NCBI RefSeq assembly: GCF_000315625.1
Contig: NW_005434601.1
Coordinates: forward strand, 155,988 to 200,886
Reading direction: 5' to 3'
From: Guillardia theta CCMP2712
Lineage: Eukaryota > Protista > Cryptophyta
Length of the DNA: 44,899 nucleotides
Below the pieces are notes generated by a model. That model worked only from the letters and a program-made list of their open reading frames with translations, ran no database searches and was not told the DNA's origin. Positions 5,489 to 11,626 of the stretch are shown piece by piece; positions within the stretch are counted from its first letter, which is position 1, and every line of letters starts with the position of its first letter. The position numbers and the translations under genes are program-made.

Positions 5489-6781
5489 ATGCGCAAGGCG
5501 CTGGGCAAGAGGAGGATCAATAACCGCGCTCTTGATCGTGTTTCCTTCCCCTCGCCCTCTGCTTCTTCTCTTTTTCCTCCTTCCTCTGAACCTTTTCTGG
5601 GCTTCAATCTCCCCCGTCCCCACCAATTTGACCTACAAACGCCTTGCGCTCGTTCCCACGTACCTTGTTTTCGTGTACCTGTTTCTTCGAACATTGTTAG
5701 CACATCCTCTTCTCTATCTCAGGGTCGGAACTATTCCGTGAGCAGAAGATATATCTCTGACAAGTCCCACGCGAACTCAAGCCATCTGACATCTCGACCC
5801 ATCCGTTCGGAACCTTGGACGATTGAGACTGCCAAGCGTATCTTTCCTGTTCTCCTCCTTTGTCTTTTCTCTGGGAACTGTGTGTCCGCAAGTGGTTTCG
5901 TGATGAGCTCTTCGAATTTACAGAAGCCCCTCCCGCTCCCCAATATCATCGGGCATCGTGGTGCGAAATCAGTTGCACCAGAGAACACGCTTGCCTCGAT
6001 TCGGGCCGCCAAGAGACTGGGCTGTACCTTCGTGGAAGTGGACGTGATGCTTTCGAACGATAAGGTAGCCTGCATCCATCATGATAACACGTTGGATCGA
6101 TGCACCAATGGACGAGGCTTCCTGTGGGACCAGAACATCGATGCTCTCCGCTCCTTGGACGCTGGCTCTTGGTTTGACAAGGAGTTCGCTGGCGAGAAGC
6201 TGCCGCTCTTGTCCGAGGTGATCCAGACCTGCAGGGATCTCAACCTCGGACTGAACCTGGAGATCAAACACGCGACTGACAAGGCCACGGACGTTCCCAC
6301 TCCTGAGGAGAGGGAGAGGGAGATCGAGCTCGCCGAGAAGGTGTGCGTTGACATCGTAGACCTGGAGGCCGATCCCTCCAGCATCGTGTTCTCGAGCTTC
6401 AGCAGGGATGCCATCAGGGTCCTTTACGAGAAGCTGCCGCACTTCAAGCGGAGCTTCCTGGTCGAGGGCCTGCCGGAGGACTGGGAGGATTTCGTGGCTC
6501 GTTACGAGTGTGTCAGTCTCAACTTCAACCATAAGGAGGTCCCCAACCAGAAGATCGCCGAGATCAGCTCACTCGTCCCCACCTACTGCTATACCGTCAA
6601 CGAGCCGGGGAGAGCTCGAGAGCTCTTTGCCCTAGGTGTGAAGGGCGTGTTCAGCGACTGGCCGCACGTCATCCAGGAAGGCCTTATTATCATCGACAGC
6701 CCACAAGAGAAGGTCGACACAACGGGAACCTCCTTGCCGAGCTCCAATCTTCCTCCCCTGCGCGTTGCTGGCTTTGCGTGA
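5489..6781 (+). CDS. Glycerophosphodiester phosphodiesterase (GDPD, UgpQ-like); true start uncertain (ATG 5489 or 5903)
   Basis: Motifs IIGHRGAKSVAPENTLAS, VEVDVMLSND, HHDNTLDRCTNGRG, LDAGSWF, LNLEIK, FSSF, YTVNE, GVKGVFSDWP cover the complete GDPD TIM barrel with catalytic His residues. No intron in the catalytic domain. Confidence 0.93.
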   Translation: MRKALGKRRINNRALDRVSFPSPSASSLFPPSSEPFLGFNLPRPHQFDLQTPCARSHVPCFRVPVSSNIVSTSSSLSQGRNYSVSRRYISDKSHANSSHLTSRPIRSEPWTIETAKRIFPVLLLCLFSGNCVSASGFVMSSSNLQKPLPLPNIIGHRGAKSVAPENTLASIRAAKRLGCTFVEVDVMLSNDKVACIHHDNTLDRCTNGRGFLWDQNIDALRSLDAGSWFDKEFAGEKLPLLSEVIQTCRDLNLGLNLEIKHATDKATDVPTPEEREREIELAEKVCVDIVDLEADPSSIVFSSFSRDAIRVLYEKLPHFKRSFLVEGLPEDWEDFVARYECVSLNFNHKEVPNQKIAEISSLVPTYCYTVNEPGRARELFALGVKGVFSDWPHVIQEGLIIIDSPQEKVDTTGTSLPSSNLPPLRVAGFA

Positions 6782-8529: not shown

Positions 8530-8782
8530 ATTTCGCACGGGGCACTCGAAGTAGTAATCCTTAAAGTATTATTCACATACAACAGTCACAAGTTCTTGAG
8601 GAGCAAAATTCCTCAAAATCGAAGGCACACTAATGTTGAAGCATCTAGGCTGCAGAAATCTGATCGAAATATATCAGAAATGTGCCAAGGAACGAAGAGA
8701 TAGAAAAATAACAATCAGTCCAACACCATCACCAAGAACGATAAACCCAACAGAACATGCTCAGAAGGAATCCGCCATACAC

Positions 8783-11626
8783 TCAACAACGCTGACCTTG
8801 CCAGATTCTCTTGATGTTTCTTCCCACTGATGCATAAACTGTCGCATGGCAACCTGGAGTTCTCAGTGTGAGGCCGCGATACAGGTGAATGAAACAAGTC
8901 AGATGAATGAAACAAGTAATGGACTGACTTGATATAAAGTCTTGAGAGTCAATACGACCATGTACCAATAACCTGATGATCACAAAAGTGTCAATGGAAA
9001 GCCGAGCTACATTGAACGAAATCACCGAAAGGAGCAAGAGTGCTATGACGGGTAATGCTTGTGTAAGCAATCCTTCCAGCCACAATGTACCTGAAGCACG
9101 TCTCAGAATGTCCAAGCTGTTCAGTCTTCAGTACCAGAAAAATAGGATCAAGAGCTTCTTTCTGTCTCCCATTATCATCGGGCAGAACATCTGAAATTCA
9201 TGAAGATTACGAAGGAAACGATTATCATGCAGGGATTGTATACCTTGCTAACCTTCGTCATGTTCGTGTCGACAGTGTTGCATTTGTTCTTTGTGCAGGC
9301 CGCTTTTTCTCCAAATAGCACAAAAGTTCCAACATATTTGCCGACAATCAGCGCAGGCTTCAGAAGATAAATCATGGTTGCAATATGCAGGAACATCTCG
9401 AAGCAGCCGTGCAGAAGGCCATCAAACGATCCATTCCAGCCAAAATGTTGAGACACTCCCAAGAAAAAGCAAGTAAGCGCAACATTGATAATTGTGTCTG
9501 TTAGCAAATCGTCGAAGACTTCTTTGCATGATCGTATTCTTTCTGCTGATATTGATTCAGGACGAGCCGGGGTTGATCGTTTAGGCTTGACTTTTTCTTC
9601 AGTTACCGTCAACGACAAAAGTCCACAAAAGCACGTCCAAAGATATTTCCTCCTTTGATATTTTCCATCGTCTTCTCGAATGTCACGCACTTCGGCCTCT
9701 AATCCTCCGATTCGTTTCTGCAATCCAGACACGTCGGATTCCACTCTCTCTACAGCTTCAATGGCTGTGCTTGCTGCAAGCTACAGAAACGCATAAGTGA
9801 TATGAGACTGCTTTGTCATCGGGAAGGATACCTGTGCCTGCTTTACTTCTTTCCTTGCTTGGGCAACGGTCGCGCTCGCAACATCCAATTTTTTCAACAA
9901 GCTATCCAACGAGCTTGCTTCCTCGCTCCTTGGGACTTGAAGTTTAGACAGCGCATTCAGACCGATGGAAACCATAGCCTTGACAACAGCAACATTCTCG
10001 TCCTAAGATACGAAAATCGGTCAGGTGAAACTATTCTTTGGAGAGAAATTACTTGTTTCGATTCGAGAGCCATAGCAACAACTGGATGTCGACCAGGTTT
10101 CACGACATGTACAAAGCCAGATCCATCTCCAATGGGTCCCAGATACTCACCAGCATTCACCTTTCCCTTAACTTTCAAGGGAACCTACACAGATAGTCAT
10201 AACCTTGGAGTGCAGGGGAGAGGAGGATAACAAACCTGTCCGAGGTATGCACACCAATGACCAAGTTTTTCTTGTTCTTTAGTCGGATGGGGTTCACCTT
10301 TCCAAAGAGCGTTCTTATCCGACACCACGAGGAACATCTCGGCATCCAAATCATCCGCAGGGACGAGAAAGCCCTCCTTGAGCGCCACCACAGCGCCATT
10401 GAAGAAGGGAGACAGACCCTCTTTGCGCGTGAAGAAATAGGCTTGATCACCCTTACTCGTCTCGCTCCAAATGTTGCCATGCGGATCGAAGGTATCCGAC
10501 AGCTCACGACTTGCCAGAGGCGATGGGAGATGCCAGAACCAAGCCATGTTGTCGCCGCTTTCCGTTCCCGTCATCTTAGATGCATCATTGTGTTGTGCGG
10601 GCGGCTCCATAAAATTGCTCTGCGGGGGCACTTGACAGTCAGGTGGGCTGTGAAGATCTCCATTCATCGATGGAGAAGATTCGTCTGTCATAGAGTCTTC
10701 AGGGCTCAGCGACCCTCCATTAGTGGTAGAGCCTTGTGTCTTCACAGACTGTGAATTGAAGTACTGCCCTCCTGCATCAATTGCATCCAGGAATGCCTAA
10801 CAAACAAATCAGACACACACACACACACACGGCTTCACATATATTGCAGTAAGGCAAAACAATCAATCAATACCTGCAAAGACACCTCGAAGGTCTCGCC
10901 GACGTAAGGCATTTTTGAACGAAGTTTGATCTTGACGTTCTCTCCATCGATAATTGCCGGTGTGACTGGCTGTTGATGCGCGGGATACACCACATGATTC
11001 TGCATAGAAGAAGAGATCCTCGTCCCTGCCTCGTCCTGGCGCTGACGTTTGTTTCCGCTCAAATTTTCTTGAGCCTCAGTCGCGTCCAAGAAACTATAAG
11101 GATTGTTGCCGAGACAAGGTTCCTGCGTAGGCACAGCAGACGGAACCGTTGGGATATTGTCGAGAACGCGGTCCATGTCGGGCGCTTGATAGGCATCCAA
11201 CAGAGTATGCTCTAAGAACTGGCTTGTCCCTGAGATTCCAGGTTGGTTATGGGGAATCGAATGTGCGGGGGCAGAGAGATGTGCAGCCTGCAGGTTCCGA
11301 AGAAGGAGGGGATTCTTCGGAGTGAATCTTGCGCCTGTCTTGGCCCACCTTTCACCAGACTCAAGTTTGTAATACTTGTGCATTCTACTAAATGGCCTCC
11401 CATTAGATCCGTCGTCCCTGTCCCTCTTCCTCCTGAGCTCATCGAACCTCTGAGAGAAGAGCTCGCCATCGATAACCTCATAGCAACCGTGAACCTGGTC
11501 CCATCTCAAAGCTTGTCCTTCCTCGCATATCCTCTGCACAGCATCGGGGAGGAGCAATCCCGTCGACAGCGGCGACACCTCTGCCATGCCCTTCTCTGCG
11601 CTGACAACCCCACCCCCAATTTCCAT
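8783..11626 (-). CDS. Winged-helix (HSF/ETS-like) DNA-binding domain + Peptidase_G2-like intramolecular chaperone domain + coiled coil + hydrophobic/TM C-terminus; 3' end approximate
   Basis: Exons 11626-10874, 10796-10236, 10184-10053, 10002-9832 and 9780-onward join in frame through canonical phase-0 GT-AG introns of 77, 51, 50 and 51 nt. Domain calls are by motif resemblance (see findings). Confidence 0.75.

Follow-up and report, generated by a model that had tools for sequence, protein, structure and literature searches.

Has a phage tail chaperone been built more than once into a eukaryotic membrane-bound transcription factor? MYRF and MrfA are the one well-known case, and a gene of the cryptophyte alga Guillardia theta CCMP2712 raises the question again. 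The gene lies on the minus strand of contig NW_005434601.1, within a stretch of 44,899 nucleotides (the window, to which all unlabeled positions refer). A first-pass annotation had joined five open reading frames there into one protein and read it as an analog of MYRF, with a winged-helix domain, a disordered linker, a chaperone domain of the kind found on phage tail appendages, a coiled coil, and membrane helices. The gene is real and conserved, and its architecture is, as far as we found, undescribed; the activation step of its product is unproven. A literature search of incomplete coverage returned no description of this architecture, nor of Peptidase G2 in eukaryotes.

Gene structure and transcripts

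The gene has 10 exons and 9 introns and encodes 783 residues, running from 11587 to 8645 on the minus strand, as do all of its features given below. The four introns proposed earlier, at 10797..10873 (intron 1, 77 nt), 10185..10235 (intron 2, 51 nt), 10003..10052 (intron 3, 50 nt), and 9781..9831 (intron 4, 51 nt), are all of the GT..AG type and in phase 0, and their boundaries hold, with 0 stops in the five exons. That these exons form one protein is borne out by RNA-type contigs from two studies, which skip all four introns; a single 2270-nt RNA contig runs from 11575 across all four splice joints into the membrane exons, and none of the introns is skipped in a DNA-like contig. Exon 1 (10874..11587, aa 1-238) is followed by exon 2 (10236..10796, aa 239-425), with the low-complexity linker and the first half of the phage-type domain, exon 3 (10053..10184, aa 426-469), exon 4 (9832..10002, aa 470-526), in which the phage-type domain ends and the coiled coil starts, and exon 5 (9244..9780, aa 527-705), which holds the coiled coil, an RRxYLWxCFCGL motif, and hydrophobic helices 1 and 2.

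The ends of the gene differ from those first drawn. RNA contigs define five additional introns (9243-9191, 9134-9091, 9025-8973, 8928-8854, and 8796-8660), and the gene does not end at 9175. Exon 6 (9135..9190, aa 706-723), where hydrophobic helix 3 begins, exon 7 (9026..9090, aa 724-745), and exon 8 (8929..8972, aa 746-760), with hydrophobic helix 4, are placed by RNA contigs together with homologs, and exon 9 (8797..8853, aa 761-779) by RNA contigs. Exon 10 (8552..8659) supplies the last 4 codons, the stop at 8647-8645, and the 3' UTR, with poly(A) at ~8552. Raw 2026 RNA reads back the 3' splice joints, and homologs from other cryptophytes match the additional 3' exons. The left edge of 8783 in the first-pass annotation had been set by the open reading frame at 8783-9115, which we rejected as coding, the transcript-based exons being in another frame. 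At the right edge, 11626 gives way to the ATG at 11587 as the more likely start codon: contigs begin at 11575-11586, and the Rhodomonas homolog starts there. At position 8851, adjoining a splice joint, 3/20 RNA reads have G for A, probably an alignment effect. The window also holds an intronless glycerophosphodiester phosphodiesterase gene (GDPD, E 9e-41) with an N-terminal extension at 5489-6781 on the plus strand; it lies 1.8 kb from the 3' end of the phage-domain gene, with no sign of a connection between the two.

Searches with the window gene used its exons one at a time, and the chained exons were used for residue count, frame, and hydropathy. For whole-domain searches we used transcript-derived homologs and an intronless paralog from the same assembly (GUITHDRAFT_110963 / EKX42913; one 681-aa open reading frame), which is 55% identical over the exon 2 part.

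The N-terminal domain

The first-pass annotation had read the N terminus as a winged helix of the HSF or Ets type. A model built from the window's own exon 1 (pLDDT 76) has a predicted winged-helix topology, with three helices and four strands in the order helix-strand-strand-helix-loop-short helix-strand-strand (11315..11557) and a short recognition helix; a conserved RPFSRMH motif lies at 11398-11378. When the model was compared with 48,161 chains, only 14 reached a Z of at least 5 (Z 5.2-6.5), and all were ETS/IRF/HSF/IBP39 DNA-binding domains. The top ten fold rows were ETS domains (Z 5.9-6.5) and HSF1 gave Z 5.5, modest scores of which even 6.5 is within the range that the fold-comparison tool labels possibly a common arrangement. 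Foldseek placed the same winged-helix class on top, but with E above 0.08, and the best row for the Atlas model was HSF_DNA-bind at TM 0.55. The fold assignment thus stood, at modest scores, but no sequence profile matched: a Pfam search of exon 1 and 22 members assigned no family, the HSF_DNA-bind profile PF00447 matched 0/22 members, and the Ets profile PF00178 matched none. Canonical HSF genes are present separately in G. theta, and hhalign of the N-domain against their domains gave 1.9%; we therefore rejected a canonical HSF. Likewise, neither exon 1 nor the paralog had a Pfam match to an Ndt80/PhoG domain, and the modeled fold is a winged helix; a search of the G. theta genome for Ndt80 also returned no match, as did its positive control.

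The domain carries a net positive charge in 20/22 members and has conserved Arg residues. ETS domains have two Arg in the recognition helix; here one recognition-helix Arg is conserved in 20/22 members, and the position four residues on is variable.

There are six N-domain loci in G. theta and two loci of the middle, phage-type domain; the remaining four have the N-domain with no phage-type domain nearby. In one of these (L014:4117-4899, at ~756,100-756,900 of G000:C2, minus strand) an RWP-RK domain (E 5e-17) directly precedes the N-domain in the same open frame, and no phage-type domain is present within the 6 kb examined. The other three (L013:2086-2570, L015:4150-4830, and L016:3500-4180) are probably soluble family members. 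That the N-domain occurs without the phage part, and once fused to RWP-RK, supports a role as a transcription factor. Predicted folds thus support a winged helix of the ETS/HSF/IRF type, and the N-domain very probably represents an unannotated winged-helix family that binds DNA. A winged-helix family not annotated before is thereby defined in cryptophytes.

The phage-type domain

The middle domain (9949..10478, exons 2-4) is Peptidase_G2-like and is predicted to adopt the beta-tulip fold of the phage gp12-type C-terminal chaperone domain. Its model, a monomer prediction made from the 55% identical paralog (pLDDT 85), had as its best PDB fold 3GQH, the phi29 gp12 C-terminal fragment (Z 12.0, rmsd 2.7, 115 residues), in a register that sets model residue 19 against chain residue 692. 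The 15 rows that followed were capsid-decoration or fibre-base proteins of phages, and the beta-tulip class to which these belong is trimeric (PMC7602432). In sequence comparisons, hhalign against a profile of ten phage domains gave 94.6% (E 7e-8), the top BFVD matches were preneck appendage proteins (E 4e-8), and the Atlas linked the domain to Peptidase_G2-bearing and related bacterial and phage clusters by features (0.94) and by structure (TM 0.72-0.78). The algal and phi29 domains have GxxVxL, VVS, and LGQV motifs in common, and alignment with the ten phage domains showed that the long phage insertion is absent from the algal domain. Other profile evidence is fainter: the best PDB profile match was again 3GQH (E 0.12), Pfam PF11962 (Peptidase_G2) weakly matched 5/30 members, below the cut-off (best E 0.0048), and a genome-wide profile search of G. 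theta with PF11962 found no match. We conclude that homology of the middle domain to the gp12-type chaperone, the earlier assignment of this segment, is well supported, and a eukaryotic use of this chaperone fold is thereby defined.

Searches of Pfam and PHROGs with single exons and the paralog returned no significant family. Matches to Vexin, NPV_P10, tropomyosin, and fibritin were rejected as generic helix or coiled-coil matches, and PDB sequence matches to a two-component sensor, a MAX effector, and a designed protein as short chance matches. Searches of viral contigs, genome contigs, and annotated phages found no close viral or prokaryotic donor; the single genome match fell within a flippase-like open reading frame region and was rejected as chance. 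We use the term phage-derived because of the distribution of fold relatives and not because of a tree.

The domain's fold relatives make it likely that it trimerizes the algal protein. In phi29, the gp12 C-terminal domain is required for trimer assembly and is afterwards cut off (PMC3357383). The site of that cut can be followed in PDB entries, where the N-fragment of mature gp12 ends at Ser691 and the C-fragment begins at Asp692; the uncleaved precursor 3SUC has Gln in place of Glu695. From these chain boundaries and the E695Q precursor, we take Glu695 to be the catalytic residue. The algal equivalent of S691|D692-F-A-E695 is G354-D355-Q-A-Y358 (10437..10451). The motif D-x-x-E is present in 10/10 diverse phage domains, whereas the algal family has G-D-[QL]-[AG]-Y, with Gly, Asp, and Tyr invariant in 37/37 distinct motifs and Glu in 0/37; the Asp directly after the cut site is thus always kept. 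The cleavage near G|DQAYFF suggested in the first-pass annotation therefore has the correct structural position but lacks the catalytic Glu, which is replaced by Tyr throughout. It follows that release by the phage mechanism is unsupported, and, judged from these motifs, phage-type self-cleavage is not supported. Several polar residues of the domain are also invariant across the 37 motifs.

Linker, coiled coil, and membrane region

Upstream of the phage-type domain is a low-complexity linker of 60-130 residues, and no trimeric beta-helix or beta-prism client was found directly upstream of the domain in family members. The NLS-like basic motif KRQRQ, noted in the first-pass annotation as part of a disordered linker, is present at 11036..11050 and is a candidate nuclear localization signal; 16/17 cryptophyte-type members checked have a comparable motif on the N-terminal side of the phage domain. 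That description overlooked a small conserved module inside the linker (~10758..10939), a strand-like segment with an LQxFL[DN] helix that is split by intron 1 and is a candidate oligomerization stalk.

Heptad counts place a coiled-coil region at 9670..9909 (exons 4-5). Between it and the membrane helices lies the conserved RRxYLWxCFCGL motif (9654-9619), a basic-aromatic-Cys motif of the multi-pass clade that could be an acylation or membrane-contact site. The several hydrophobic helices expected after the coiled coil are present, though moderately hydrophobic: hydropathy gives about four in the window protein, with Kyte-Doolittle values of only 1.2-1.7, the first two at ~9507-9451 and ~9417-9340. 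The multi-pass domain matched no Pfam family and no solved structure. In single-pass members of the family the TM helix is strong, basic residues usually flank it on the N-side, and a Cys-rich tail is often present, an arrangement like that of type II proteins. No host-protease cleavage site or motif was identified in the protein.

All of these parts are encoded, in a conserved order, by one spliced mRNA: the N-domain, basic motif, small module, phage-type domain, coiled coil, and hydrophobic helices.

Distribution of the family

In the paralog, the N-domain, the small module, the middle domain, and the coiled coil follow one another and lead into a single strong TM helix, after which comes a short tail that contains Cys. 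Homologs were found in Hanusia, Geminigera, Rhodomonas, Chroomonas, and Cryptomonas and at aquatic metagenome loci. At least six cryptophyte genera keep the layout, some members with one membrane pass and others with several, and the proposed order of DNA-binding domain, chaperone, coiled coil, and membrane segment is accordingly conserved across cryptophytes; the N-domain precedes the middle domain at most loci with sufficient upstream DNA. In the family tree, which contains no prokaryotic rows and carries long-branch warnings, a multi-pass clade that shares RRxYLWxCFCGL and includes the window gene forms a 9-row set with support 97/97.

Distant members with other N termini include a Telonema subtile protein and an unassigned transcript with a C-terminal anchor. 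The former (P0070, EukProt EP00656) has a Cys/His-rich zinc-finger-like N terminus, a Tyr-type phage domain, a coiled coil, and a TIR_2 domain (E 3e-4) and has no TM helix; it is possibly a signaling protein that reuses the phage-type domain, and it may come from a prey organism of Telonema. In P0067 (L022:259-1536) the phage-type domain stands behind an unrecognized N-terminal domain, with a tail anchor at the end, and in P0061 it stands behind a likewise unrecognized, Cys-rich N terminus and the small conserved module. G. theta also has two Peptidase_S74 (PF13884) matches, L069 (G000:C94:203438-203605) and L070 (G000:C38:529548-529640), one of them within a 1000-aa open frame and both away from the window gene.

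Possible modes of action

The reading we favor, tentatively and at somewhat less than an even chance, is that in cryptophytes these proteins form a family of transcription factor precursors tethered to a membrane, with a trimer scaffold and release by a host protease. The protein would sit in the ER or nuclear envelope in a type II-like orientation, the first two thirds of its chain facing the cytosol. A homotrimer would form through the coiled coil and the phage-type domain, and its three winged helices may bind repeated DNA sites. With Tyr for the catalytic Glu, the phage-type domain would hold the trimer together without cutting in the manner of a G2-type protease. Release of the N-part to the nucleus would fall to a host protease, in response to a signal that the membrane or luminal part senses; the NLS-like motif argues for such a release. 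Counting against this reading are the modest fold scores of the N-domain, which matches no HSF or ETS profile, the only moderate hydrophobicity of the window protein's helices, and the failure to identify a host-protease site. The G-D that is invariant precisely where the phage protein is cut also counts against it, since a purely structural role leaves this pair unexplained.

That same G-D, which is also kept in the distant Telonema-type members, is the starting point for a full MYRF analog, a rather unlikely alternative in which the trimeric phage-type domain still cuts itself at G354|D355 by an altered catalytic mechanism, setting an N-terminal trimer free. The segment before the site bears a Trp, like that of cyanophage members; invariant polar residues (D63, N65, K69, H83, C85, R26, and Y22, in model numbering) could form a new active site; the NLS-like motif is always on the N-side; and the long phage insertion is missing, as in MYRF (PMC3742443). 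The residue at the Glu695 position speaks against it, being Tyr in 37/37 members and Glu in 10/10 phages, with E695Q as the uncleaved PDB precursor. So do the lack of Ser, Thr, or Cys at the position after the cut, the upstream linker in place of a beta-helix or beta-prism client, and the Telonema protein, which has the domain and no TM helix and hence nothing to be freed from. That the MYRF principle was invented a second time, independently and in this full sense, with a new winged-helix family and another phage chaperone that trimerizes and cuts at the ancestral site without the phage Glu, is by the same token rather unlikely.

The absent Glu would suit a protein that is never released but stays in the inner nuclear membrane and binds DNA from there, either as a regulator integral to the membrane or to tether chromatin, an idea to which we give distinctly lower weight. 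The window gene's clade has a conserved multi-pass domain, and NLS-like motifs with long flexible linkers are compatible with inner-nuclear-membrane targeting as well. The existence of soluble N-domain relatives points the other way, as does the single-pass clade, whose variable Cys-rich luminal tails are typical of sensor precursors.

We consider it improbable that the winged helix of the N-domain binds RNA or protein, and is not the DNA-binding domain of a transcription factor, and that the whole molecule serves as a trimeric scaffold or receptor in the membrane. The modest fold match, the short recognition helix in the model, the want of a sequence profile, and the pairing of the phage-type domain with a TIR domain in the Telonema homolog would fit such a role, but every top fold match is a DNA-binding domain, and the RWP-RK fusion and the conserved basic residues with the NLS-like motif also oppose it. 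An artifact, contamination, or a recently inserted viral gene, suggested by the phage and bacterial fold relatives of the domain, is very remote and largely refuted by the RNA and ortholog data, given nine spliceosomal introns, poly(A), two paralogs, orthologs from six genera, and searches of viral and prokaryotic collections that found nothing closely related.

Comparison with known systems

SREBP, ATF6, and plant bZIP28/NTL are membrane-bound transcription factors activated by RIP. Like them, the algal protein would be a cytosolic factor tethered by TM helices, and release by a host protease is possible; unlike them, it has no bHLH, bZIP, or NAC domain and no identified cleavage motif, and it carries a phage-derived, putative trimer module. 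With HSF and ETS/IRF factors it would share the predicted winged-helix topology, matched at modest scores, but it shows no sequence-profile match. HSFs are coiled-coil trimers and so a precedent for trimeric factors (PMC3742443), whereas the algal coiled coil does not directly follow the DNA-binding domain and the algal protein is membrane anchored.

Domain D4 of phi29 gp12 (PF11962; 3GQH, 3SUC) shares the fold (Z 12.0) and an N-terminal register that begins at Asp. The algal domain differs in having Tyr for Glu695, in scoring below the Pfam cut-off, in lacking the long insertion, and in its setting, mid-protein before a coiled coil and membrane anchor with no beta-helical spike upstream.

The closest parallel is with MYRF, MYRFL, PQN-47, and Dictyostelium MrfA (PMC3742443, PMC8326128), which have the same order of DNA-binding domain, NLS, phage chaperone, coiled coil, TM segment, and variable luminal part. 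The trimer logic is alike, the coiled coil and TM region after the chaperone domain are present by hydropathy and heptad counts, and the long phage loop is missing in both the algal domain and MYRF (PMC3742443). The parts themselves are non-homologous: a winged helix replaces the Ndt80 Ig-fold, and a gp12-type beta-tulip domain with no Ser-Lys dyad replaces S74/ICA, to which none of 30 members matched. The algal domain is also without its donor family's catalytic residue, and one algal clade is multi-pass. The algal protein is thus MYRF-like in layout and not a member of the MYRF family. Since the same layout has been assembled from unrelated parts, the design appears to have arisen twice, and, with the catalytic Glu replaced, the algal system poses the question of whether eukaryotes keep such domains for trimerization or for self-cleavage.
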